Positions 1,753 to 47,319 of a stretch of DNA of 64,000 bases are shown here, piece after piece. The number at the start of each line of letters is the position of its first letter. Positions within the stretch are counted from its first letter, which is position 1. Source of the DNA: Adineta vaga (Eukaryota > Animalia > Rotifera); NCBI GenBank assembly GCA_021613535.1, contig CP075492.1, positions 7,502,001-7,566,000 on the forward strand, given 5' to 3'. The notes below the pieces were generated by a model. It was not told the origin of the DNA and ran no database searches. It saw only the letters and a program-made list of their open reading frames with translations. Made by a program: the position numbers and the translations under genes.

Positions 1753-3060
1753 TTAAATAACTGTATTTGATCTACCATAACGTTTGATTTCTGCAGGTAA
1801 AGATTTCGATTCAATAAATTGTTTCAATTCATCACTATTAATTGTCATAATCATTGTATGTTCACCACTGAGTGGTTCATCTATAGGTGCATATCGACCA
1901 AAATATCGTCGAACAAATCCTCGTTCAATCAAACGAACAAATGTCTTGACAAAAGAAAACAAGATAGAATACATAGAAAAGAAATCATTCGATAAATTAT
2001 ACTTTCTCACCTTTCGTACAACTGCTTTGTCATAAAAATACTTATGATTTTTCATCACATATTTCGAATATTCATGATAAACTTGATCAAAAGTAAATTT
2101 TGTATCTGTCAGTATCCCTCCATTATTGTCTTCTTCATCTTGATCATCATCATCACCACTTTCATTGTTTCCACTCATTTGATTTTGTGATCTTTCATCC
2201 ATTCGTTTAATGACATTATTTGTCATTAAAAGTAATAATAGTTCTAAATGTGTCAAACATCCATCTAAATATTGATCTGGTCGAGTATCGTCACACAAAC
2301 TTGCATTGGAATCACGAAGATAATGAATAATTTTTTGTTCAATAGTTGTTAATGAATTAAATAGATCATTTTCAATTTGAAGATCTTTTTTGATTTTATA
2401 CGATTGAAGAACATATTTGGTATACTCAGCAGTCGAAGGTGGTGATAGAATATAATAGATTTGTGAAAAACGTGATTTTAATCGTTTTTCAGGCAATTCA
2501 AGACAATCCGAACGATTTGAAACAGCAATTGTTAGGATCGAATAATTTTTCTTGTCCAAATAAACAGCATCAAATAATGTATAAAGAATAGAATTCAATT
2601 TCTGATAGGTAAATTGTTCGAAATGATCGAGAACAAAGATGAAATAAAGTTTTTTATCTTTTTTTTCATTGCCAATAGTTTCTAATAGAATTTGCAGATT
2701 GTCACATTGATAATCATGATCTGTTTTCATTTGAATATTGTATTGTGAAGAGATTTCTAGAACAGCTGATGATTCAACTGAATGGATTAAACCATTGAGA
2801 CGAAAGATAAGTACACGTTCGAGAAGAGATGGCTCATCTGTATGAAGTTTTGTAAAGATATGTTCGAGTAGTTTGGTTTTTCCACATGATGGAGGGCCAG
2901 CAACGAGTACTGTTTCACTTTTATTTTCTGTTATATGACGATGAAGAAATCGAGAGAATTGTTGAAGAAATAAATCAATCGTTGGATTAGTGAAAAGAGA
3001 AGTTGTTGTAGTGACAGTCGGTTTCGATGTTGCACGAGAAGGTTGACGTCGTAAACTCAT
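1753..3060 (-). CDS. ORC4: Origin recognition complex subunit 4
   Basis: AAA+ Walker A GPPSCGKT, LNGLIH, FIFVLDHFEQF (Walker B), LYTLFD and EKRLKSRFS. An in-frame 66-nt GT-AG intron at 1945-2010 is read through in the ORF track. Likely start is ATG 3060. Confidence 0.85.
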   Translation of the reverse strand: MSLRRQPSRATSKPTVTTTTSLFTNPTIDLFLQQFSRFLHRHITENKSETVLVAGPPSCGKTKLLEHIFTKLHTDEPSLLERVLIFRLNGLIHSVESSAVLEISSQYNIQMKTDHDYQCDNLQILLETIGNEKKDKKLYFIFVLDHFEQFTYQKLNSILYTLFDAVYLDKKNYSILTIAVSNRSDCLELPEKRLKSRFSQIYYILSPPSTAEYTKYVLQSYKIKKDLQIENDLFNSLTTIEQKIIHYLRDSNASLCDDTRPDQYLDGCLTHLELLLLLMTNNVIKRMDERSQNQMSGNNESGDDDDQDEEDNNGGILTDTKFTFDQVYHEYSKYVMKNHKYFYDKAVVRKVRKYNLSNDFFSMYSILFSFVKTFVRLIERGFVRRYFGRYAPIDEPLSGEHTMIMTINSDELKQFIESKSLPAEIKRYGRSNTVI

Positions 3061-3400
3061 ATTGATTTTTGTTGAGCTTGATTGATATGAATGCAAAAGA
3101 TTCTGATTATCGAATGAACGTAATATAACAATGTTCGACTTTGTCAGTCGAAGAGAATCAGTTACGACGCCATCTATAATAGATTATTTGAAAGATAGAT
3201 TTCTAAAGAAATGAACACTCCATGTTCAGTAGAAATTATTGCAAAATATAGAAAATGTTTTTCTTTAATTAGATTGTTTAATTGGATATCATCATCCTTT
3301 GTCTGGGAAATATGAAATGAATCATTTTAGATGTTCTTTCTTCTAAAAGTCTATTCTCTTCATCTTCTCATTCTCATCATATATTAGTTAGCAAGCAAAG

Positions 3401-6400
3401 ATGGTGAACGACAAGCTTATTCTATTTGGTGTATGTTGCCATTTTGTGTTGTTTTGAATGATATTATAATACGTACAATTTAGATTAATTCTCTTATCAG
3501 TGCACCACTTGAACCAATTAAATCAATTGAAGAACTTCGTATTGCTGAACATTTTTTAAATGTGATTAATCAAATGTATGAAATGTCTGTTTTCTTTCGA
3601 GTCATTGACACATATGTTTGATTCATTTAGTGAAGCACAGAAGTTTTCAGAATCACGGATTGATATTCCCTCAGTTCATGATAGTGTTCATGAGAAATTT
3701 AAATTTATTCTTGACTATCTTTCAAGTATGCAATATCAATCATATAATTTCTTATATTATTTTTAACTGTAATAGAGCAATCAACATCTTCTATTACTGA
3801 ATGGAATATCAATGAATTAATTCGAGGCAATGATAATCTTCTTTCGAAAGTAAATTTGATCGAGTCGAACTTTATTTGTTTATATCTTAAAGTTTTGACT
3901 ATTTTAGACAGCACTATTGATTATATTTGCTGCTCATGCTGATACATATTTTTATTCGAAATCACTCGAAGCTGATGAAGCTCAACATGAACAATTAGCA
4001 GCACTCTTTGATTTACATATGATCGAAGCAACACAAAATAATCCATATCAATTAAATGTTGATGCTTGCTTTAAAGATGGTAAGAATTCGAATTGTCGCT
4101 TCTGATTACAAATCGATTGTTGATTTTCAGATTCTGCTGGTGCACAACCAAAACAAACAACACCAGTGATTAGAAAGCGTCGTAATACGCAGATTTGTAG
4201 TAAGTTTTTGTGTTTTCTTATTGCTATACAAAAATTTATCGTTCTTTTTTCGAATAGATTTAAATGATTCATTAAATAATCAAAATCGTTCTTCAATTCT
4301 TGATCGAAGTTTTACTCGTTCACCCGGTGTAAGTTATTTTTCTTATTTCTATTCTTTTTAATATCTTTCATGATTTCAGCAATCTCAAGCTGCTGCCGCT
4401 GCTGCAGCCGCTACTCAACAAGCACGTGCACTTCAAGAAGATCTCTATAAAGTTCAATATGAACTTGATGATTTTCATCATAAATATGGTGGTCTAGAAA
4501 AAAGCTACAATGAACTCAGTAAAGAATTCCTTTGTTATGTATTTCAGCTTCTTTTTTCTAATCTAATGTTTTTCAAGAGGAAAAAAATCGTGAATTATCT
4601 GAAAAACTTCTTCGTCAAGCTGATTATGATACAATTAAAGATGAACGAAATAGACTTCGTGAAGATCTTCATCGTTATGAAATTGATAATAAACGGTAAG
4701 TTTATTTTTATGATCATTCATTTAATTGAAGAAGTTTTGGATAGTCTTCATGGAGCCAAAGAAAATGTAGCAGATTTACAACAACGTCTACAACAATATC
4801 AAAAGAAAAATGATGAAATGCATGAGAAAATTGCTACATTAGAAAGAAAAGTACGATGGCGTTTTATTTATTACTTTTAATATCGAGTATATAATGAATC
4901 GATTTAGCTTCGTGAATCAAAACAACAATGTGATGAATATAGCAAAAAAATTGTAAATCAAAATGCTGATATTCTTCTACTTTCATCATCAAATGAACGT
5001 GTGAAAATGTTAGAAGTCGAAAATCAACAAATGAAAATCATCAAAGAACAACGTGAAACAGAATTATTAAGACAAATTCGACATTTACATGATGATAAAG
5101 AAGAACTTCAAAAAAAACTTGATGGTAAAGAAACATGACTTCTTCATTTTTTGAACAAATAAATGAAATGAAATTTTTAAATTTGATTTAGAACCAATGA
5201 CAACGACTGAAACTCCACTCATTGTTGCTGAAAAACGAGCATTAGAAGAAGAATTACATATACTTAAAATGTCATTCTATGATCGACGTGAAGCAGATAC
5301 AGAAATTGAATCATTTAAACAAACAATTAAACAATTAGAAGAAAAACTTGAACAACTGAGAAATGAATGTCAAGAATTATATAAACAAAAACATGAATAT
5401 GCTGAAGAACAAATTTCACGTATGTTATTTTATTCAATTGATTCATCTAATCATTTTTATCAATTTTCTTATTTGTAATCTTTAGTTCGAAATGAACTTC
5501 ATGCTCAACTTGAAAATTATGAGAATAAATTAACTTCATCATCAAAACTCATTGAAGAATACAAACGAGAAAATGCCAAAACAGTCAGTATTATATTAGG
5601 AAGAAAAATATAGTCGAAGAAATCTCTCTTCATATCAATTTAGACTGATGAATGTAATCTTCTTCGAAGTGAAATCATTTCGTTAAAAAGTAAATTACAT
5701 GGACAAAGTGGTGAACTCAATTCTGAAATTGTTAAATCTTTTGATTTACGACATCAACTTGGATTACTCAACGAACAAGTTTCATTAAAATCAGCGGAAA
5801 TTGTTAGTCTTTTAACTACAATTGATTCCTTAAAAGTTGAAATCGATCATATTAAACTTGATCGAGATAATTCTCAATCGCGTTTAATTGATACACAAAT
5901 GCAATATGATAAATTAACAAATACATGTTCAATGTATGAAATGAAATTAAATGAACAAGAAGAACGTGAAACTGAATTGAAATTACAAGTTCAACAAGTA
6001 CGAGAAATGCATGAAAATATTGTTCATGAAAAGGTTCGTTCACAAACCGAATATACGGATGCACAAATGCGAGTGTCAAAAGCTGAACAAGCTCTAAAAG
6101 ATAAAATTGAAGAAGTTGAAAATGTAAGTTTCATAAAAAAAAACAAACAAACATATTAATATTATAAATATTTTTTGTTTCTTAGTTGAAAAAAGCAGCA
6201 AGATTATATAGTCAAGATATAAAAGAACTTGAAAAATATGGTGAAGATCTACGTGAACATTATGAAAAATCGAAAGTGACATATAAAAAGGTACGAATAA
6301 CTAAATGATAATAAAAGAGAGAAACAAATTTTATTTTGTTTTTATTTAGACTGAACAAGAATTGAGTGAATTGAAAATGACACATTCAAAAACTTTATCT

Positions 6401-7314: not shown

Positions 7315-7689
7315 GAAATCAAATTATTATTTGTACTATTGACAAACAAATCATTCATATATATGACTGTTATACTTCATACAAATGCAAAATTATTCTT
7401 TTTTTTTCTTTATATAAAATGACAATAAAATGTTTAACTTTAGATGAAATAAAATATGATAATACTATATTTTGTAATGGAAAGAAAGATGAATTATTTA
7501 AGAAATCAGAAATATATCATATCCTCTTTGATTGTACCACCATTTAAGATACAGATCATTCTTTACCAGACATCTGTCTTTGCTCTGAAGAAAGATAGTC
7601 ACATCTTACTACAGTACTTCAATGCACACAATCTTTTGTTGCATTATTTCCGTCTAACAAAAAATTAATTTTTTTCAAAACTCTACTCA

Positions 7690-8118
7690 TCATAATTCTT
7701 CTTTTACTTTTTGTAAAAAATCATGTAAGACGGTTTCATTAGAATTAAGTTCATTGATGTCTTTTCCATCTAAAATCACATTAATATTGGATTTTGTCGA
7801 TTGTAGTTGTAAAAAACGTTCAATTGATTTCAATGTTTGATGCATTTCTTGAAATAATTGTCTGATATCATCTGAATTTGAACCACCATTATTTACCAAA
7901 CGAATTAATTTCGTATTCGTTATTTTGCCACGATACACTATGTATGATAGAAGAATAATTAATAAGATAAGAAGAAATATAGCAAATATTGTATTTCGTG
8001 TTGAAGCAAATTGACGATTATTTTGATTAGAAAGAATAGTCGACTCGATGATAGATGTTGTAGTTCGATCAACAAAATTTGAAGTTCGTCGTTTATTTGA
8101 TTTATTCGTCTTTTTCAT
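7690..8118 (-). CDS. Hypothetical type II single-pass membrane protein
   Basis: 142-aa ORF with one hydrophobic helix (IFAIFLLILLIILLSYIVY) followed by a short coiled coil. Confidence 0.5.
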   Translation of the reverse strand: MKKTNKSNKRRTSNFVDRTTTSIIESTILSNQNNRQFASTRNTIFAIFLLILLIILLSYIVYRGKITNTKLIRLVNNGGSNSDDIRQLFQEMHQTLKSIERFLQLQSTKSNINVILDGKDINELNSNETVLHDFLQKVKEEL

Positions 8119-8833
8119 GGTTAAAAATATAATTGTGTAGATAAATAATATCTTAATGTTTATATTATTTATTTTCTATTCTATTCTTACATCACGTTTT
8201 ATTCAAAAAACAAAATATGTGATTTATCGATTATTATCTACGATATATAAATCATCAATATAAAATCCACGATCACTCGACCGCATCAAAAGCGTAATTT
8301 AAGGAAAGTTTCATCGTCTATCGCGAAAAGACTACTAAATTATCTATTAGTAATAATAGGAATTGAAATCGTTTGTTAATAGACGCAGCAGTGTATCAAT
8401 AAAGAAATATTATATGTGTATATAGAGATGAGTTACTCATAAGACGCAAATACTGAAATAAAAAATCGTGAGGGTGTTTAAATCTTTTTTTTTTCCTTCA
8501 ATTTTTTCCAGTAAAGACCAATCAATTTATTTTGGTTTTAATGTAAGAAAGTCGGTCATGTCAGATACATCTTATTTATTTTTACTTCAGAAAATGCACG
8601 TGTAAACTATGGTATGATATGAATTTCTGAAAAAAGATTTTTGAAACAATAACTTGATAATTATACATTTCTCTAATCTTTTAATACCCTCCTATTTCAT
8701 TATTGTTTTGTTTTTTTCAAAATGAAATCGAATACTTATTCAAAAACAATACGATTCAAGACAATATAAAAACCCTGCTGATTTTTGTAGCTATCAAACG
8801 TTTTAATTTTCTGATTAGTATTCAATTGAGACG

Positions 8834-13266: not shown

Positions 13267-13338
13267 GGGGGCATAGCTCAGTGGTAGAGCGATCGCTTCG
13301 CATGCGATAGGTCGTGAGTTCAATCCCCACTGCCTCCA
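13267..13338 (+). tRNA. tRNA-Ala (anticodon CGC)
   Basis: Cloverleaf GGGGGCA/TGCCTCC with the G3:U70 alanine identity pair, D arm GCTC/GAGC, anticodon arm ATCGC-TTCGCAT-GCGAT and TTCAATC loop. One A-C mismatch in the T stem. Confidence 0.95.
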
Positions 13339-15261: not shown

Positions 15262-15759
15262 CTAGGAAGATTGCTTGGATAAATTATAATCTTGTTCAGT
15301 CATGAGCAATTTTAGATTATTATCTCCATCTTTTAATGATGGAATCAAAATTCCTAGATAACCTTCACTTAGCGGTTTTTGTTGAAGTAAATCAGGTGTT
15401 TTAATAATTTCATCATTCAATTCAACTAAACGTCCTTTGATACTTGCACAAATCGTAAATGTTTGTTCATTATCACATTTAATTCGATACAATAATTTAT
15501 TTGGTTGAACATAATCAGCTCCACGTTTTGATTTACCACTCATGGATTGATTAACACTTGCAAGTGATTCGATGGAAGTAATTTTCAAAGGATTTGTAAG
15601 AATGGGATGTCGTTCCGAAAGCATCAATACACAAACATGATTGGAATGAACAAGAACAAGTGTATCATTATTAATTTCATTATGAACATTCGTACGATAA
15701 TATTTTGTATAATATCGTTCTATAACACTCGGATATTTGATACGTTTTGCTAAAGACAT
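15262..15759 (-). CDS. ABITRAM: Protein Abitram (FAM206A/Simiate; glycine-cleavage-H-like fold)
   Basis: YPSVIERYY, HSNHVCV..L...HPI, SGKSKRGA, GRLVELN and P.SEGYLGI. Confidence 0.85.
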   Translation of the reverse strand: MSLAKRIKYPSVIERYYTKYYRTNVHNEINNDTLVLVHSNHVCVLMLSERHPILTNPLKITSIESLASVNQSMSGKSKRGADYVQPNKLLYRIKCDNEQTFTICASIKGRLVELNDEIIKTPDLLQQKPLSEGYLGILIPSLKDGDNNLKLLMTEQDYNLSKQSS

Positions 15760-15876
15760 ATTGCCTTTCTTTGATTGAGAAAAAAAGATGATGTAAACAT
15801 ATTGCGAATATTATACTTTCTTTCATTGGTGGAGTTATTGTAACCAATAATATAGCCGAGAAAATATATCATCTGA

Positions 15877-16276
15877 ACATGAATTCTTTCTTCGGTCGGC
15901 TCGATGTTTTCCATTATTAGAATTTTTAAATTTTGCGTATGGTGAAGCACAACAAAAGATCTTAGTTGAATCCCAGCATAACGATAATATATTATTTGAG
16001 ATTGCTGAATCTTCTCATCTTACAACACTTGACTTTGGTCGTGTACATATTGATTATGTTGAACAAATGTTAAATGAATCAAAAACACGATTACCTTGTT
16101 TAACAGAGATTTGGGTTCATTTTGATGATTTGAAGAGATGCAACAAGAATCAATTGTTTGAATTTGAAAAATTTGGTTACTCACCACTCCTCCAACAACA
16201 ATAACGATGATGATGTCGACTTCTTGAAAAGGCAATCTCCAGATTTCTATCGTTATTTCCCATCGTTAAAACTTTA
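15877..16276 (+). pseudogene. Orphan 3' fragment of the F-box gene
   Basis: Matches 20267-20690 (EHEFFLR...RYFPSLKL*) with a 23-bp deletion; the 5' part is absent. Confidence 0.9.
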
Positions 16277-16510
16277 ATGTATTGTGAATATTTAAATGTA
16301 TGAAAATAAAATTAAGAGGATGACCTCTATTATTTGCTGAAATGAGTTGCTTTTAAAAGATTATTTTTTTGTGATTATTTGAGCGAGAAATAGTGAATCG
16401 TGTGGGAAATCGTTAAGAACATATGGATAATAAAAGATATTTAATAGATTATATGTTACCTTTTTATCTATGAGAAAAACAAACGAAATGCTTTTCTTTT
16501 CTAATATAAA

Positions 16511-17787
16511 GTGGTGCAGATAGTTGTTGAATATGTTGGACATTGATGAGATTTGCTATGCAAATTCTTGATCGTGTTTTACATGGTTTGTTTTAATGAT
16601 GGAAAGAAAAGATTAAATGAAAACTTTGTTTTTTTTCTAAAGAGGATTTTGGATTTAAACATCGTCTATGGATTTATTCTGGTCGTCGTGGTGTTCATTG
16701 TTGGGTTTGTGATCAAACAGCTCGTGAATTACAATCAACTATTCGTCAAGCTATTGTTGAATATTTAACTGTTATTTCTGTAAGTTAATTTTCTTTTCCA
16801 ATTAATAATTCCATTTGATTTATTTAGGGTGGAAAAGATTCTTCAAAACGTGTAACACTTTATACACCATTACATCCATCACTTCAGTGAGGAAGAGAGC
16901 ATCTTGTGTTTGATGAAATTTAACTTTTTGTATATTTATAGAAAAGCTCGTGAAATAATTTTAACAGAATTCGATGGATATTCTTGTTTAGAACAAGATT
17001 TTCTTGGAGATGATCAACGAACTGAACGATTTCTTCGACTTGTTCCTGATGATAATATCCTTTTTTCGATTAAATTTGAGATACGAAATTTATTATTGAA
17101 AAAAAAAGGATTTTTTCTTTTCATTTCTATTTCTTCTTTAAAATAATTCTTCTTCATTTAAATTTAGTATCGTAAAGCTGCTTATATAACATTAGTTGAT
17201 GAAATAATGTTTGAATATTGTTATCCACGTCTTGATGGTAATGTAACAAAAGGAATGAAGCATTTACTTAAATCTCCATATTCAATTCATCCAAAAACTG
17301 GTCGTATATCAATACCAATTCCATTAGAATCTTTAGCTTATTTTGATCCATGTAAAGAAGATAATGTTCCGAATTTGAATGAATTATGTCAACAAGTGGA
17401 ACAAATACCAAAACAAAATGAAGATATGGAAAATGGAGGAAAATTAAATTCAAAACAAAAAGATTATAATCAAACAGCTCTAAAATCATTTATTGATTTT
17501 TCTTCTCGTTTCGTTCAACGTGCACAAACGAGTAAACAAGATGAAACTTTAGCGAAAACTGGTACGTGATTTGTAAAGAATTGTTCTTCTTTCTTTTAAA
17601 TCAATGCTGTCAGGCGAAATTTAATTCAAGAATAAAAACGTCAGATAGATTATTTTTCCTCTTTATTGTAATGATAATGATAAGACATGTGTGATAAAAC
17701 TATGTATCTTTATTTAATTAAAAATTAAATAAATAGGATGTTGTTGAAGTACAAGGAGAAACTGTTCTTACTGATGATCAATTCTAA
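16511..17787 (+). pseudogene. PRIM1: DNA primase small subunit pseudogene, copy 1 (5'-truncated, one exon deleted)
   Basis: C*ICWTLMRFAMQILD, DFGFKHRLWIYSGRRGVHCWVCD and YPRLD.NVTK...HLLKSPYSIHPKTGRIS. Has an in-frame TGA and a 132-bp deletion. Confidence 0.9.
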
Positions 17788-17856
17788 CTTCGACTGATAG
17801 AAGAGATAAATGGTAAGAACTTTGAACCATAACAATGACTTCTTTTTTTCTCAGTA

Positions 17857-17994
17857 GTGTAAAACACGAAAGTTGAATTCAACTATTCAACTTTTCCATT
17901 TCTCACACACCCTCCGAAACACCTTCACCCTGCCTTGCCCCTCATCACCCTTCACCTCAAATGGATAGTTGAATTCAACTTTCAAGTATTACAT
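17857..17994. mobile_element. MITE-like element A (unit 1)
   Basis: ~30-bp imperfect terminal inverted repeats: GTGTAAAACACGAAAGTTGAATTCAACTAT / ATAGTTGAATTCAACTTTCAAGTATTACAT. Confidence 0.7.
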
Positions 17995-18006
17995 TTATGA
18001 TTGTGG

Positions 18007-18177
18007 GCAGGTGGGTATAACACTTATAACATTTTAGCGAAGTCAGTTACAGACTCGAGATCTTCATTGTTCAAAAGAAAGTATCGCAATACGCTACAGA
18101 TCACTTCCTACGGATGATGAAAGACCCAGGCCTCTTATTATCTTGACTAAAATGTTATAAGCGTTATACCCACCTGC
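18007..18177. mobile_element. MITE-like element B (unit 1)
   Basis: 31-bp terminal inverted repeats with one mismatch: GCAGGTGGGTATAACACTTATAACATTTTAG / CTAAAATGTTATAAGCGTTATACCCACCTGC. Confidence 0.8.
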
Positions 18178-18845
18178 ATTTTTTTTATTCCGATAGTAAT
18201 TAGAAAATCAATGAGAATTCATTTAGACCGAATGCACACTAAAAACACCAATTTTCATCAAATTGTCTAATATAATAACTGTCGTTGTAAAAAAGCGTCA
18301 ATAATGTTATTCAACTCAACTTTGTTTTGAATTCACTTTCTCTGCTTTATTGGCCCTAAATCTATAGGTTTAATTCAAGAATTTTATCATTCGATAAATT
18401 CTATGTAAACTTCTGTATTCTAACAATGAAACTACATAATGTCATATCATTCATAAAACTGTGCTTATGTCAAACGATTTTTCTTTCACAACAAATGTTA
18501 CGTTTCGATCTTTTTTTCCACATTCCAAACTCAACTAAACATTCATGTCAACTCTAGGAAATCAAAAACATAATCACCCATATAACCGAAAAGAATAATT
18601 TTCTATATTTCGTAGAGATTTACAAAAGAAAATGTTGCCATTTCAAACAGTATTCCTAATTCCTAATTGCGAATGCAATTGAAATGACATACATTGTTGG
18701 CAATGAATCATTTCTTTTCTTTCCCTCAGTTCAATATACGTAACCAATCAATAATTCGATTGAACACATTCATATCTGAGTTATATTTTCTTCGACGAGG
18801 TCATGTTTAAATATATATATATATATATGCAATCTCTGACTGATC

Positions 18846-20690
18846 ATGAACACGCTAGACAAATCCAAGAAGGGAACGCAACAAAAGAGTATATCCTCTT
18901 TCCGAATAGCATTATACCGAATAGAAGCAAACATGAATTATCGTACTGATATTCATCTATTAGATCTGCCTGTCGAGATACTTTTCAATATCTTAAAAAG
19001 ACTAAACAATTTGGATGTTCTTTATTCATTGATAGGAGTTAAAGGACTCGATTGTTTGGCACGAAATGAAATTTTTACAAATACTCTGAGTTTTGGGTCC
19101 ACTGATGGTGGCGAAGATTCTGCTATTGATGAAACAAAATTAAATCGATTTTGTGATTCCATATTACCTCAAATTCACAACGATGTTAAATCTCTTGTTT
19201 GTGATGCAAAACTCATTGATCGTATTTTACGTGCTGGTGTTTATCTCAACCTCACTCAACTCAAAATAACTGGATATCTTGATAATACTTTTCCCGATAT
19301 TTGTACAGGTAAAACAACTCGATATCTACGAAAGTGCAAGGAATCCATGAGAATATTTGTTTATCTTTAGATCAGTTACTTCTCCGATCTAGCTTCAAAA
19401 CACAAATCACGAATCTTACATTACTCACTAAGTACAATAGAGACGTAAAACCTATTGATGAAACAACAAATGTATTTATAAAAGTGGTTGATTTTTTTGA
19501 AAATCTAAATCATCTGGATTTTATTGGATCATTTTACAGTACACAACCCATTTTCTCATTCATTGATCTACCACTCTCGACTCGTTTTTCTTCAAATTTA
19601 ACTAAACTATCTATTAAAGTGAATAGTTTGGGAGATTGTTTTTATTTACTTGATGGTCGTCTCATGCAGTTGTCCTCATTTATTGTCATTATTGAGGAAG
19701 ATGAAGATTATTCACCAATGGAATTTAATGAAGTAAGTATCGAAAAGTGAATATTGTTTGTATCTTTCACTTTCAATTATGAATCTTTTTTCCATCTAGA
19801 ATAATCTCAATCATTTGAAATGTTTTTCATTAACATCTAAATCTATAACGAATGAATATAATAATCAAATTGTACCTCTTCTTCGTCGAATGTTAAATCT
19901 TCAAGACTTAACACTATATCTTCAAATCAAAAAACGACATCGAATTGTCGATGGCATTCAACTTGAGAATGATATTCTTAGTCATTTATCAAAACTGCAA
20001 AGATTTGTCTTTTACATAAGTACTGGATTGATTTCTGAACACTCTTTTACTCGTTTATCGAATGATGATATTCAACGAACTTTTACGAACTTCAAATTTG
20101 GAGAAGTTGGCTGGACGATGAACGATCTCAATAGATGTCTGATCAGATATCATATCTTTTCACTTCCATATAAATTCTATTCGATAGAAGCTGTTGGTAA
20201 TCAATTCACGAATACAATCTATAAAAATGTTACTGCTGTATGGGTATCTGATAGTATTTCATTTGAACATGAATTCTTTCTTCGATTGGCTCGATGTTTT
20301 CCATCATTAAGATATTTAAATTTTGCGTATGGTGAAGCACAACAAAAGATCTCAGTTGAATCCCAGCATAACGATAATATATTATTTGAGATTGTTGAAT
20401 TTCCTCATCTTAAAACAGTTATCTTTGGTCGTGTACATATTGATTATGTTGAAGAAATGTTAAATGAATCAAAAACACGATTACCTTGTTTAACGGAGAT
20501 TTGGGTTCATTTTGATGATTTGAAGAGTGTAACAAATAATTTTACAAGAGATGCAACAAGAATCAATTGTTTGAATTTGAAAAATTTGGTTACTCACCAC
20601 TCCTCCAATAACAATAACGATGATGATGTCGATTTCTTGAAAAGGCAATCTCCAGATTTCTATCGTTATTTCCCATCGTTAAAACTTTAA
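18846..20690 (+). CDS. F-box domain protein (lineage-expanded type), 3 exons; the only intact copy in the array
   Basis: HLLDLPVEILFNILKRLNNLDVLYSL F-box. Introns at ~19309-19370 and ~19733-19799 join ORFs 18846, 19334 and 19815. Confidence 0.8.
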
Positions 20691-21044
20691 TGTATTGTGA
20701 ATATTTAAATGTATGAAAATAAAATTAAGAGGATGACCTCTATTAGTTGCTGAAATGAGTTGCTTTTAAAAGATTATTTTTTTGTGATTATTTGAGCGAG
20801 AAATAGTGAATCGTGTGGGAAATCGTTAAGAACATATGGATAATAAAAGATATTTAATAGATTATATGTTACCTTTTTATCTATGAGAAAAACAAAAGAA
20901 ATGATTGTTTATATGACGTATCTCCTAAAAACCACATTGAATATTTTGATAGATCAGATCGTCGCGAATATTTTAAGCTGAAAAAATGTTTTGCCAGTGA
21001 TGGACGTCGAGTTAACGATTAGGAATAGAATATCTCTTTGACAG

Positions 21045-22599
21045 CCATATCTTTGAAATGTGATTTTGCAATGAAGAACGTGAACTTGTCTTCGATATTG
21101 ATATGACAGATTATGATGATGTATGATTTTGTTGTCGGGAAAAATTTCATAATAGCAAAAGAAAATGAAATGCTTTTCTTTTCTAATATAAAGTGGTGCA
21201 GATAGTTGTTGAATATGTTGGACATTGATGAGATTTGCTATGCAAATTCTTGATCGTGTTTTACATGGTTTGTTTTAATGATGGAAAGAAAAGATTAAAT
21301 GAAAACTTTGTTTTTTTTCTAAAGAGGATTTTGGATTTAAACATCGTCTATGGATTTATTCTGGTCGTCGTGGTGTTCATTGTTGTGTTTGTGATCAAAC
21401 AGCTCGTGAATTACAATCAAGTATTCGTCAAGCTATTGTTGAACATTTAACTGTTATTTCTGTAAGTTAATTTTCTTTTCCAATTAATAATTCCATTTGA
21501 TTTATTTAGGGTGGAAAAGATTCTTCAAAACGTGTAACACTTTATACACCATTACATCCATCACTTCAGTGAGGAAGAGAGCATCTTGTGTTTGATGAAA
21601 TTTAACTTTTTGTATATGTATCGAAAAGCCGGTGAAACAATTTTAACAGAATTCGATGGATATGCTTGTTTAGAACAAGATTTTCTTGGAGATGATCAAC
21701 GAACTGAACGATTTCTTCGACTTGTTCCTGATGATAGTATCCTTTTTTCGATTAAATTGGAGATACGGAATTTTTTATTGAAAAAGGATTTTTTCTTTTT
21801 ACGTCGACAAACATTACGAGAAATATTTCCGCAATTAACCACATCAGCTGAACCATGGGCTGCATTTAAACAACATACAGATGCAGTGATTCATTCAGTT
21901 ACATCAACAAACAAAGTAAGTTTTTTCTTTTCATTTCTGTTTCTTCTTTAAAATAATTCTTCTTCATTTAAATTTAGTATCGTAAAGCTGCTTTATATAA
22001 CATTAGTTGATGAAATAATGTTTGAATATTGTTATCCACGTCTTGATGTTAATGTAACAAAAAGAATGAATCATTTGCTTAAATCTCCATATTCAATTCA
22101 TGCAAAAACTGGTCGTATATCAATACCAATTCCATTAGAATCTTTAGCTTATTTTGATCCATGTAAAGAAGATTGTGTTCCGAATTTGAATGAATTATGT
22201 CAACAAGTGGAACAAATACCAAAACAAAATGAAGATATGGAAAATGGAGGAAAATTAAATTCAAAACAAAAAGATTATAATCAAACAGCTCTAAAATCAT
22301 TTATTGATTTTTCTTCTCGTTTCGTTCAACGTGCACAAACGAGTAAACAAGATGAAACTTTAGCGAAAACTGGTACGTGATTTGTAAAGAATTGTTCTTC
22401 TTTTTTTTTAAATCAATGCTGTCAGGAGAAATTTAATTCAAGAATAAAAACGTCAGATAGATTATTTTTCCTCTTTATTGTAATGATAATGATAAGACAT
22501 GTGTGATAAAACTATGTATCTTTATTTAATTAAAAATTAAATAAATAGGATGTTGTTGAAGTACAAGGAGAAACTGTTCTTACTGATGATCAATTCTAA
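21045..22599 (+). pseudogene. PRIM1: DNA primase small subunit pseudogene, copy 2 (5'-truncated)
   Basis: ERELVFDIDMTDYDDV*FCC (catalytic DxD motif followed by a nonsense codon), a second TGA shared with copy 1, SGRRGVHC, and YPRLDVNV..HLLKSP. Confidence 0.9.
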
Positions 22600-22668
22600 C
22601 TTCGACTGATAGAAGAGATAAATGGTAAGAACTTTGAACCATAACAATGACTTCTTTTTTTCTCAGTA

Positions 22669-22806
22669 GTGTAAAACACTAAAGTTGAATTCAACTATTC
22701 AACTTTTCCATTTCTCACACACCCTCCGAAGCACTTTCACCCTGCCTTGCCCCTCATCACCCTTCACCTCAAATGGATAGTTGAATTCAACTTTCAAGTA
22801 TTACAT
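22669..22806. mobile_element. MITE-like element A (unit 2)
   Basis: Duplicate of 17857-17994. Confidence 0.7.
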
Positions 22807-22818
22807 TTATGATTGTGG

Positions 22819-22989
22819 GCAGGTGGGTATAACACTTATAACATTTTAGCGAAGTCAGTTAGAGACTCGAGATCTTCATTGTTCAAAAGAAAGTATCGCA
22901 ATACGCTACAGATCATTTCTTACGGACGATGAAAGACCCAGGCCTCTTATTATCTTGACTAAAATGTTATAAGCGTTATACCCACCTGC
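22819..22989. mobile_element. MITE-like element B (unit 2)
   Basis: Duplicate of 18007-18177. Confidence 0.8.
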
Positions 22990-23660
22990 ATTTTTTTTTA
23001 TTCCGATAGTAATTAGAAAATCAATGAGAACTCATTTAGACCGAATGCACACTAAAAAACACCAATTTTCATCAAATTGTCTAATATAATAACTGTCGTT
23101 GTAAAAAAGCGTCAATAATGTTATTCAACTCAACTTTGTTTTGAATTCACTTTCTCTGCTTTATTGGCCCTAAATCTATAGGCTTAATTCAAGAATTTTA
23201 TCATCCGATAAATTCTATGTAAACTTCTGTATTCTAACAATGAAACTACATCATGTCATATCATTCATAAAACTGTTCTTATGTCAAATGATTTTCTCTT
23301 TCACAACAAATGTGACATTTTGATCTTTTTTTCCACATCCCAAACTCAACTAAACATTCATGTCAACTCTAGGAAATCAAAAAGATAATCAACCATATAA
23401 CCGAAAAGAATAATTTTCTATATTTCGTAGAGATTTACAAAAGAAAATGTTGCAATTTCAAACAGTATTCCCAATTCCTAATTGCGAATGCAATTGAAAT
23501 GACATACATTTTTAGCAATGAATCATTTCTTTTCTTTCCCTCAGTTGAATATACGTATCCAATCAATAATTCGATTGAACACATTCATATCTGAGTTATA
23601 TTTTCTTCGACGAGGTCATGTTTAAATATATATATATATATATGCAATCTCTGACTGATC

Positions 23661-25082
23661 ATGAACACGCTAGACAAATCGAAGAAGAGAACGCAACAAA
23701 AGAGTATATCCTCTTTACGAATAGCATTATACCGAATAGAAGCAAACATGAATTATCGTACTGATATTCATCTATTAGATCTGCCTGTCGAGATACTTTT
23801 CAATATCTTAAAAAGACTAAACAATTTGGATGTTCTTTATTCATTGATAGGAGTTAAAGGACTCGATTGTTTGGCACGAAATGAAATTTTTACAAATACT
23901 CTGAGTTTTGCGTCGACTGATGGTGGCCAAGATTCTGCTATTGATGAAACAAAATTAAATCGATTTTGTGATTCTATATTACCAGAAATTCACAACGATG
24001 TTAAATCTCTTGTTTGTGATGCAAAACTCATTGATCGTATTTTACGTGCTGGTGTTTATCTCAACCTCACTCAACTCAAAATAACTGGATATCTTGATAA
24101 TACTTTTCCCGATATTTGTACAGGTATAATAACTCGATATCTACAAAAGTGCAAGGAATCCATGAGAATATTTTTTTTATCTTTAGATTAATTACTTTTT
24201 CGATCTCATTTCAAAACACAAATCACAAATCTTACATTACTTACTGAGTACGATAGAGACGTAAAACCTATTGATGAAACAACAAATGTATTTTTAAAAG
24301 TGGTTGATTTTTTTGAAAATCTAAATCATCTGGATTTTATTGGATCATTTTACAGTATACAACCCATTCTCTCATCCATTGATCTACCACTCTCAACTCG
24401 CTTTTCTTCAAATTTAACTAAACTGTCTATTAAAGTGAATAGTTTGGGAGATTGTTTTTATTTACTTGATGGTCGTCTCATGCAATTGTCTACATTTATT
24501 GTCATTATTGAGGAAGATGAAGATTATTCACCAATGGAATTTAATGAAGTAAGTATCGAAAAGTGAATATTGTTTGTATCTTTCACTTTCAATTATGAAT
24601 CTTTTTTCCATCTAGAATAATCTCAATCATTTGAAATGTTTTTCATTAACATCTAAATCTATAACGAATGAATATAATAATCAAATTGTACCTCTTCTTC
24701 GTCGAATGTTGAATCTTCAAGACTTAACACTATATCTTCAAATCAAAAAACGAAATCGAATTGTCGATGGCATTCAACTTGAGAATGATATTCTTTGTCA
24801 TTTATCAAAACTGCAAAGATTTGTCTTTTACATAAGTACTGGATTGATTTCTGAACACTCTTTTACTCGTTTATTGAATGATGATATTCAACGAACTTTT
24901 ACGAACTTCAAATTTGGAGAAGTTGGTTGGACAATGAACGATCTCAATAGATGTCTGATCAGATATCATATCTTTTCACTTCCATATAAATTTTATTCGA
25001 TAGAAGCTGTTGGTAATCAATTCACGAATACAATTTATAAAAATGTTACTTCTGTATGGGTATCTGATGGTATTTCATTTGA
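23661..25082 (+). pseudogene. F-box gene copy 2, with a nonsense codon and 3' truncation
   Basis: Exon 2 begins with TAA (24189-24191) where copy 1 has CAG. Homology ends at 25082. Confidence 0.85.
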
Positions 25083-25146
25083 GATATCAATTTGCTTGTC
25101 ATACTGTAGAATTTTAATCAAATTTGATATAGTTTTTTTTTTCAAG

Positions 25147-25934
25147 ATGTTTCTTTACTTTTGTTTTCTACCGTTAGTAGTCGTAGTTGATCATCGTCAA
25201 TCTGTTAATGCATCTGTATCTTATACGACTTGGTTCAAAGAAGTTAATCAGACAGATTTATATCAGTTGCGAATGAAGGAACCGACAATTGTCGTTTTTG
25301 GTGAATTCACTGGATTAAAATCAGCTTTTATTGGAACACGTGGTCAACGTGCTCGTACACAATCAGGAACAATTCAAGATGCATTTCTTTCAATGATACA
25401 ATTTTATGAGAGACAAATGACTTTTTATTCAAATAAATACTCAAATATTCCTATTAAAAACACGCTCGAACTAGCATTGAGCGATGTAATATGGCGAGCA
25501 TTTGATCAAACGTTTTCATGTTTATGCACTTAATAATAGTTTAATTGCTACAATTAATACCAGGAAAACTTGAAGATAATCGGATAATTCAACCTAGTAA
25601 TTTGTGTATAGCAATTTGTTTAGATGCATTTTGTTCAAATGCTTTATCATATCTTGATTCTCAAAACTGTACCATACTTATTCAACGTTCATTTAAGAAT
25701 AGAAAACTATCAAATATTCGAGTTGATTGAAGTGATGTTCAACAACTTGGAAAATTCCAAACATTGACACTATCAAAATGGACACGCGATGATCCAAGAG
25801 AAGGAAATTTAACAAAATCACAACGAGAACAATTACTTCATCAATATGTTTTGGAACTAGCTTCTAATTCCAAATTAGAATATGAAAATAAATATGCAGA
25901 TAGTGTCATTTGGATTGACACGAAGAAGAAATAA
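25147..25934 (+). pseudogene. Decayed secreted carbon-nitrogen hydrolase (nitrilase superfamily)-like gene
   Basis: Signal-like N-terminus, IVVFGEFTGL (catalytic Glu motif) and IAICLDAF (nucleophile Cys motif). Frameshift or deletion at ~25530-25555 and a TGA at 25728; the reading frame continues to 25934. Confidence 0.5.
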
Positions 25935-45941: not shown

Positions 45942-47319
45942 TTAGTACACTTCTACACTATTCAAAAGAATACTATTACTCTCGCCACCAACCACTAAAA
46001 CTTTTCCAGTTGGCAAAATCGATGTTGTATGAAGACTTCGCGTAGTATTCATAGCATCCGTAATTGTCCAACTGTCTGAGGATGGATCGTATAACTCAGC
46101 ACTATTGAGATATACACCATTGTAACCACCAACGACTAGTACTTTTCCATCGGATAATACTGACGCAGTATGATAAGCACGTGTAAAAGTCATGTTTCTT
46201 GTTGTTGTCCAATTTCCTGCTAATGGGTCATACAATTCAGCAGTTCCCAAGTAAATACCATTATATCCGCCAATCACTAATACTTTTCCATTGGATAATA
46301 CCGATGCAGTATGATATTGTCGTGTATATTTCATTCGATTAGTAATTGTCCAAGTGCCTGTGGATGCATCATATAATTCAGCAGTATTGATATAAGTACC
46401 ATTATATCCACCGACAGCTAGTACTTTTCCATTTGGTAACACAGATAATGTATGATCGACACGTATATCTATCATGCTGCCAGTTGTTGTCCAGACATTC
46501 GCTGAGAGGTTATATAGTTCTGCACTTCTGAGAAAAACAGAACCTGAATCTCCACCACAGATTAGCATTTGTCCATTCGTCATTATTGATACTGCATGAG
46601 CACCTCGTTGCATATTCATCTGTGCTGCAACTGTCCAAGTTCCAGTTGATGTATTGTATAATTCGACATTTTTGAGAAAAGAAACACCATCATTTCCGCC
46701 AGTAATCAATACATTTCCATTTGTTAATACAGATGCTGCGTGAAATTTACGTGCAATATTCATAGCATTGACAGTTGTCCAATTGTTTGTTAATGGGTTA
46801 TACATTTCTACATTATTTAACGACACACTATCGTATCCACCAACTAACAATACGTTTCCATTATTCAATACAGATGCTCTATGATATTTTCGAGACTTCT
46901 GTATATTGCCGACAAATTTCCATCCTAAAAATACAATAGAAAAGATTGAGTTTGTAGATCTTCCGTTCATACTGACCTGTTGATGTCAATATTCTTCCAT
47001 TAGCCGCCGTAATCATCGTAATAATATCATAGTTTACTGACAGATTATTCTTGTAATTCAATATATTAGCAAATAATTCGCAGTAAGTCGATGATGAATG
47101 AAAACTAATTGCTTCACATTGCTCGTCGTTCAGACACGCTATTTGACATCGACGAATCGTTGATACCATAAAAGTTGCAAACGGTAAACACGTTGTATTG
47201 ACACATACGAATTGTCGACTATTTGCTACAAACATTGTGAATGATCGCATATTTTCTGAAGCAGATCGTGCAATACACATCGCAATCAAAAGCAATAGGA
47301 GCATTTTTGCTCGTGTCAT
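45942..47319 (-). CDS. Secreted PAN/Apple plus Kelch-repeat beta-propeller protein (2 exons)
   Basis: Signal peptide, CQIACL...C.AISF.....C.L (PAN), and about seven R.YHTASVL.NGKVLV.GG....L..AELYDP...W repeats. Confidence 0.88.

Follow-up and report, generated by a model that had tools for sequence, protein, structure and literature searches.

A permuted two-unit array on chromosome 3 of the rotifer Adineta vaga and the probable relocation of an F-box-like gene from the PRIM1 locus

Main finding

A 64,000-bp stretch of the assembled chromosome 3 of the bdelloid rotifer Adineta vaga (C3:7502001-7566000; the window, whose own numbering is used throughout) contains, between the ABITRAM gene and its divergently oriented neighbour, a 9.2-kb block made up of exactly 2.00 head-to-tail units (15877-25082; self-BLAST, repeat search). 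Each unit combines the parts of an F-box-like gene with a 3' part of the DNA primase gene PRIM1, in an order which is a circular permutation of that found on chromosome 4. According to the favoured reading, to which a probability of roughly 0.6 is assigned, the block is a permuted, DNA-mediated insertion from the PRIM1 locus, which would have arrived by way of a circle or head-to-tail concatemer and would later have been duplicated or homogenised.

Structure of the array

The 9.2-kb block is the sole large direct duplication of this size in the window (repeat search, self-BLAST), and no N occurs within the array region of the assembly. Unit 1 spans positions 15877-20266 (4,390 bp) and unit 2 positions 20267-25082 (4,816 bp). 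Each contains, on the plus strand, the 3' end of the F-box-like gene (A), a filler (f), the 3' part of PRIM1 (B), a spacer and the 5' part of the F-box-like gene (C). The A part comprises the last 140 codons of the F-box-like/leucine-rich repeat (LRR) gene and ~45 bp of its 3' flank. Reading of the three boundaries, with a slash at each junction, gave ...GAGAAAA TATATCATCTGA/ACATGAATTC on the left, ...GATAG TATTTCATTTGA/ACATGAATTC in the middle and ...GATGG TATTTCATTTGA/GATATCAATTTG on the right, with both outer boundaries falling on the identical base of the F-box-like reading frame. The 12-mer of the left flank (TATATCATCTGA) matches the internal and right 12-mer (TATTTCATTTGA) at 10 of 12 positions; 12-mers matching at 10 or more positions occur by chance at a frequency of ~3e-4 per position in the window. 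The F-box-like gene has an open reading only across the middle C-A junction, where a three-exon model is open from 18933 to 20690 (the joined, spliced model was used only to test the open frame, and homology searches were done exon by exon). A preliminary description of the window, made from its letters alone, had proposed an exactly dimeric, permuted block with identical phase at its ends, an intact gene rebuilt only at the middle C-A junction and a left boundary that nearly copies the internal and right ones, and all of these features are confirmed here.

The PRIM1 copies in the window are 3' fragments only (with a match to the DNA_primase_S family, PF01896, at 17207-17566; E 2e-10), and their retention of introns points to DNA-mediated copying. 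That PRIM1 is truncated at its 5' side and joined behind the F-box-like 3' flank had been described correctly, but the joint had been placed at ~20900-21045, where a filler occupying 20738-21075 is found instead. Within the A. vaga genome this filler occurs in the array only. Its junction with A is identical in both units, and since the closure junction (A-filler-B) is thus common to the two, the ends of the donor segment were joined once. The spacer between B and C contains an element resembling a miniature inverted-repeat transposable element (MITE), which is present in both units and must therefore have been inserted before these split. The ends of the MITE-like element match dozens of places, on all six chromosomes and in both orientations.

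Between the two units there are 117 substitutions (2.7 %) and nine indels, at all of which unit 1 is the shorter (by 23, 269 and 128 bp, and by 1 bp in six cases). The length differences lie at positions 16132, 16480, 17102, 17181, 17589, 18178, 18240, 18481 and 19355. Judged against chromosome 4, the three large indels are deletions in unit 1, while the six 1-bp indels may be genuine or may stem from homopolymer errors in the long-read assembly.

The donor-type locus on chromosome 4

In the haploid A. vaga assembly, which was the scope of the genome searches (100.8 Mb in six contigs), chromosome 4 holds the only other close copy of the unit. Positions C4:14275417-14276940 match B at 87-93 % identity, and C4:14277047-14278021 match the end of C together with A at 87-92 %, uninterrupted across the junction. 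The order on chromosome 4 is thus a contiguous B-(C end)-A, as against A-f-B-C-A-f-B-C in the window, which amounts to a circular permutation of the donor order. A full-length PRIM1 occurs in the assembly on chromosome 4 only, directly upstream of the F-box-like gene, which is the donor arrangement that had been predicted from the window. This PRIM1 gene is 92 % identical to the A. steineri DNA primase, and its synteny (ATP synthase gamma, PRIM1, zf-C4, OST-HTH) is shared with A. steineri and Rotaria sordida. The arrangement on chromosome 4, taken with the conserved synteny, identifies B-C-A as the native order and the order in the window as a rotation of it. Native contiguity of C and A, as the preliminary description had it, follows both from the uninterrupted chromosome 4 copy and from the R. 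sordida homologue (495 aa), residues 3-490 of which are colinear on 18942-20684, straight through the unit junction (...ISFE/HEFF...).

The chromosome 4 copy of the F-box-like gene is a remnant, with 107 bp in the place of the 2,030 bp of spacer and 5' half of the gene in the window; its 5' half is lost and a frameshift lies near the junction site. As this copy has decayed and the middle gene of the window is the sole whole one, the net effect is a relocation of the gene, and the expansion of the F-box family that had been suggested for such insertions is not supported at this locus.

No F-box-like gene follows PRIM1 in A. steineri or R. sordida, which makes it probable that the arrival of the gene on chromosome 4 likewise took place in the A. 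vaga lineage; PRIM1 followed by the F-box-like gene as the ancestral order in these relatives is ruled out on the same grounds. The gap between PRIM1 and the zf-C4 gene measures 4.9 kb in A. vaga (local positions 4830-9693 of C4:14272001-14282000), compared to 770 bp in A. steineri. The extra DNA in this gap includes the F-box remnant and a 306-codon minus-strand open reading frame (ORF; local 7342-8262) of unassigned kind. The closest relatives of the F-box-like gene are Rotaria proteins (~61 %), with named Adineta proteins reaching at most 44 %. The annotated protein I4U23_021685 (377 aa; local 2958-5974 of the same interval) joins the N-terminal exons of PRIM1 to the C-terminus of the F-box remnant and skips the PRIM1 exon with the end of the primase domain (local 4383-4751); it is probably a faulty gene model of the only full PRIM1 in the assembly.

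The empty site in Adineta steineri

The orthologous region of A. steineri, available in five assemblies, encodes VanY, HSP70, an F-box gene, ABITRAM and a 411-aa gene, in the same order as in A. vaga. ABITRAM and the 411-aa ortholog of the right flank gene lie ~330 bp apart there. In a translated comparison, colinearity extends to position 15810 of the window and resumes at 25177; the interval between the two points is ~340 bp long in A. steineri and 9.4 kb long in A. vaga. This short gap shows that the site is empty in the sister species, and the block thus represents a true insertion. It lies in the shared upstream region of ABITRAM and the right flank gene, ~105 bp from the ATG of the former and 64 bp from that of the latter.

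An empty site had been predicted in an allelic or ohnologous region. It was found in orthologous form in A. steineri, but this haploid assembly contains no ohnologous empty site, ABITRAM, the right flank gene and the left F-box-like neighbour all being single copy. The choline kinase gene likewise has only 40 % relatives in the assembly, with no ohnologous block. A simple tandem duplication in place was also considered and rejected, as it needs a single unit in native order between the flanks, whereas the order here is permuted and the orthologous site lacks the unit; a plain duplication would have had to start from one unit that was rotated beforehand.

Relative ages of the units and the chromosome 4 copy

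In three-way alignments the two units are sisters, 2.0-4.0 % apart (2.7 % overall) as against 7-12 % to chromosome 4, and most changes fall on the shared stem of the units or on the chromosome 4 branch. The proportion of synonymous differences per site (pS) is ~0.05 between the units and ~0.12 to chromosome 4. The common ancestor of the units is thus younger than their split from chromosome 4. Divergence between the units is uneven over 400-bp blocks (0.5-5.2 %), and there is no sign of recent gene conversion between them, the longest identical tract (252 bp) lying within the 95 % range of random placement.

Two histories are possible. In the first, one unit arrived and was duplicated later, for instance by exchange between the flanking 12-mers, while in the second at least two units arrived and unequal exchange later replaced all of them by descendants of one. 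That the 1.6-kb middle gene is fully open speaks for the second history or for an early duplication, because the dead neighbouring copies have gained a stop, a frameshift and three deletions in the shorter time since the units split. A rough estimate puts the chance that a split gene free of selection kept its frame intact throughout the stem period at well below one in ten. Derivation from three units by way of two deletions is unparsimonious, as both cuts would have to fall on the same base of a 4.4-kb unit.

Proposed mechanism and alternative explanations

A permuted order that bears no transposon hallmarks points to a circular or head-to-tail repeated intermediate. A ~4.8-kb segment of chromosome 4, reaching from inside PRIM1 exon 3 through the F-box-like gene to ~45 bp past its stop, would have been copied as DNA, and its ends would have been joined head to tail via the 339-bp filler to yield a circle, or a concatemer made from one. 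The repeating molecule may then have become inserted on chromosome 3, in the short promoter region that separates ABITRAM from its divergent neighbour. A break point inside the F-box-like frame, where 10 of 12 bases match the target, would account for the rotated order, and both outer junctions would result from one exchange within TGA, the three bases that end the 12-mer. Whole genes would in this way be rebuilt only at unit-unit junctions. The array would then have been duplicated after arrival, or would have arrived with at least two units and been homogenised by unequal exchange. Decay of the original chromosome 4 gene would have come afterwards, with the effect that the gene moved. The sequences show the structure of the array, the donor-type locus, the empty site of the sister species and the relative ages; that the intermediate was circular or concatemeric, that microhomology was used and in which order the later events took place is inferred.

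Several observations weigh against this reading. No source of the filler was found in the genome or in the A. steineri, Rotaria and chromosome 4 loci compared, nor by translated search. A linear donor duplicated head to tail and copied by break repair would give the same product as a circle. Instead of microhomology of the target, the left 12-mer may represent a diverged beginning of the array. The A. steineri spacer is too diverged to be aligned at the exact insertion base and aligns only on the ABITRAM side, to ~15850. When polarised with Rotaria, amino acid changes in the F-box-like gene number 17 on the array lineage compared to six on the chromosome 4 copy, and such an excess fits relaxed selection after the move or a non-functional single-unit phase.

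A linear template is the first alternative to be considered. Here no circle is formed, and a chromosomal head-to-tail duplication serves as repair template, through synthesis-dependent annealing or microhomology-mediated break-induced replication, with copying that starts and ends at one 12-mer. This yields the same permuted product of whole units, the boundary microhomology suits template-switch repair, and the retention of the donor copy indicates a replicative process. It requires, however, an extra duplication that has since vanished, given that the chromosome 4 locus has neither a second PRIM1 part nor any trace of filler. A circle is favoured over a linear template for this lack of any trace of a tandem copy or of filler on chromosome 4, and independent, repeated template switches on a linear donor cannot explain the array in view of the identical closure junction. 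A linear template is therefore held to be unlikely.

The option that the preliminary description had put first is a two-unit circle, taken up in one step through a single crossover at the microhomology, with the present dimer as its untouched footprint. The exactly 2.00 units, the identical phase at both ends, the 10/12 microhomology and the open state of the whole gene at the inner junction all agree with this. Under such a history, however, the distance between the units should equal their distance to the donor, whereas the values are 2.7 % and 7-12 %, with a long shared stem. Since the units are sisters, the dimer is not the untouched footprint of a dimeric circle, and later duplication or unequal exchange is needed. 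Recent gene conversion would have left long identical tracts between the units, and the longest, at 252 bp, is in the chance range. Only a donor other than the assembled chromosome 4 haplotype could rescue the one-step account, which is thus quite improbable. The corresponding star-like history was rejected, as the constrained chromosome 4 PRIM1 would need to have evolved several-fold faster than the dead copies. Duplication after arrival, which the preliminary description had mentioned in passing, or turnover of the array, is in better agreement with the sister relationship of the units.

An assembly artefact, in which two haplotypes were joined in tandem or a longer array was collapsed to two units, is very unlikely. 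All nine indels being shorter in unit 1, six of them by 1 bp, and a unit distance of 2.7 %, which is within the range of allelic divergence in A. vaga, could be counted in its favour. A false join would not, however, give a seamless inner junction with a frame colinear with both the chromosome 4 copy and the Rotaria protein, and in a single true unit the C-A junction would be missing altogether. The sequence is free of N here, and the distinct large deletions of the units are easily resolved by long reads.

Capture or movement by a transposon, such as a rolling-circle Helitron or a pack-type DNA element, can practically be dismissed despite the MITE-like element in the spacer, as the array ends inside coding sequence, inspection showed no terminal inverted repeats, TC...CTRR ends or A/T target, the flanking 12-mer belongs to the gene itself, as chromosome 4 shows, and is not a target duplication, no transposase ORF occurs in the unit, and unit and filler have no genomic copy beyond chromosome 4. 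The absence of transposon hallmarks and of a transposase from the unit is in line with the transposase-independent insertion that had been proposed.

The F-box-like gene

The middle gene is 100 % identical to the annotated A. vaga protein I4U23_013108. Both of its Pfam matches are sub-threshold, with 12.6 bits (E 0.12) against a cut-off of 24.3 for F-box-like and 13.6 bits against 40 for LRR_14. It is consequently labelled F-box-like and not F-box, a name taken from the motif and from the UniRef naming of its Rotaria homologues as 'F-box domain-containing protein'. The truncated copy of unit 2 has a TAA at the start of exon 2 (short-intron model) and the A part of unit 1 has a frameshift. With the middle gene open beside these, the sequences suggest that selection may have kept one whole copy. 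The ratio of nonsynonymous to synonymous change (dN/dS) between the F-box-like copies is ~0.25 for the 5' parts and 0.87 for the 3' parts.

The truncated copy of unit 2 is in frame and stop-free from 24631 to 25533; the frame crosses the array boundary at 25082, bridges the gap of 64 bp and ends in the right flank gene, within its first coding exon. This read-through makes up one 300-codon ORF, from which a chimeric transcript would be possible, the TAA that the short-intron model places in exon 2 notwithstanding.

Comparison with known systems

Reversal of segment order from A-B to B-A, together with breakpoint microhomology, has been read, for segmental duplications of the human genome, as evidence of circular intermediates (Chicote et al. 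2020, PMC7450558). There, as in A. vaga, the order is reversed between donor and copy, and a circularised donor is inferred there that interacts replicatively at the acceptor. That account concerns order reversal between duplicated segments, whereas the A. vaga array has a whole number of tandem units, a 339-bp filler and units that are younger than the move (cf. PMC7450558). The cattle KIT alleles underlying colour sidedness arose by serial translocation via circular intermediates (Durkin et al. 2012, Nature 482:81, as cited in PMC3420103) and share with the A. vaga array a segment in permuted order on another chromosome, a retained donor and the absence of a transposon. Duplicates of tilapia vasa, mentioned in that paper as having arisen via circular DNA, are alike in that a gene was duplicated to a new place through an inferred circle (PMC3420103). 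Unlike in cattle, the A. vaga unit measures 4.8 kb, is present in exactly two tandem units and rebuilds its gene only at the unit junction. The cattle segments are reportedly hundreds of kb long, and one step is said to return to the original locus by homology. For the tilapia vasa case, we know of no tandem dimer.

Two head-to-tail units and a short boundary repeat are also what tandem duplication in place by unequal exchange produces, and the present pair probably arose from an earlier state in this manner. Such duplication alone does not account for the rotated order, nor for chromosome 4 sequence lying where A. steineri has no insert. The signature of a permuted insertion is already published for cattle KIT and human segmental duplications; particular to the A. 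vaga case are that there are exactly two units, that the gene exists only where they meet, that the filler is long and that the source copy has decayed.

The locus provides a base-resolved case of permuted gene relocation in an animal, with the donor-type locus, the empty site of a sister species and the closure junction in hand. It illustrates that a gene can depend on the presence of more than one unit to be carried intact, that the old copy can decay afterwards with the result that the gene moves and does not multiply, and that the promoter region common to two genes can be divided by an insert with no visible loss of either gene. Genome change in bdelloids is often attributed to break repair after drying, and literature tying bdelloids to circular DNA was not found beyond passing mentions. 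It is a speculative and rather doubtful extension that reintegration of circles or concatemers formed in break repair would be a recurrent, transposase-free route of gene movement in bdelloids which may also carry foreign DNA. This proposal would imply two or more moves of the F-box-like gene within the A. vaga lineage, to the 3' flank of PRIM1 on chromosome 4 and later to chromosome 3, with the filler as a co-captured fragment; one locus does not establish such a route as common.

Features of the array and flanking genes

The features of the array and its immediate flanks are listed in Table 1. The orthology of ABITRAM is further supported by Rotaria proteins named 'actin-binding transcription modulator', which are also among its matches. 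The right flank gene has no Pfam family.

Table 1. Positions of the array components, boundary 12-mers and flanking genes in the window
Feature	Position	Strand	Remarks
ABITRAM coding exon (left flank gene)	15262..15759	-	ORF; 84 % to A. steineri 'Protein Abitram'; GCV_H-like Pfam match; single copy
Left-boundary 12-mer TATATCATCTGA	15865..15876	+	10/12 to internal and right copies; target-side microhomology or diverged first 12 bp of array
A1, dead F-box-like 3' fragment	15877..16324	+	23-bp deletion, frameshift
f1, closure-junction filler	16325..16469	+	146 bp left after 269-bp deletion of unit 1
B1, PRIM1 3' fragment with introns and 3' flank	16470..17733	+	128-bp deletion; two stretches of 93 % and 82 % identity to chromosome 4
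MITE-like 150-bp element with 39-nt inverted ends	17851..18000; unit 2 copy ~22663-22815	.	In spacer; short genome matches, inverted repeat
C, 5' part of F-box-like gene	18846-20266 and 23661-25082	+	Self-BLAST, Rotaria alignment
Sole open F-box-like/LRR gene, I4U23_013108	18933..20690	+	Spans unit 1/unit 2 junction 20266/20267; likely introns 19309-19370 and 19733-19799
Internal 12-mer TATTTCATTTGA	20255..20266	+	Native F-box-like coding sequence at end of unit 1; contiguous in chromosome 4 copy
A2, 3' end of open gene and ~45 bp of 3' flank	20267..20737	+	92 % identical to chromosome 4 locus C4:14272001-14282000, local 5542-6021
f2, 339-bp filler	20738..21075	+	Joins F-box-like 3' flank to PRIM1 exon 3
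B2, PRIM1 3' fragment	21076..22545	+	Starts inside exon 3 (ERELVFDID); colinear with chromosome 4, introns included
Spacer and C2, F-box-like copy lacking its 3' part	22546..25082	+	Cut at the base where A1 begins
Right-boundary 12-mer TATTTCATTTGA	25071..25082	+	Last bases of array
Right flank gene, first exons	25147..25934	+	Ortholog of 411-aa gene adjoining ABITRAM in A. steineri; tblastx colinear 25177-25921; single copy

Two further features were observed outside the array. A tRNA-Ala(CGC), 100 % conserved with A. steineri, is encoded at 13267-13338, between the HSP70 gene and the left F-box-like gene, and positions 45985-46456 are taken up by a short tandem repeat of ~141-bp period, the copies of which are 75-78 % identical (self-BLAST).

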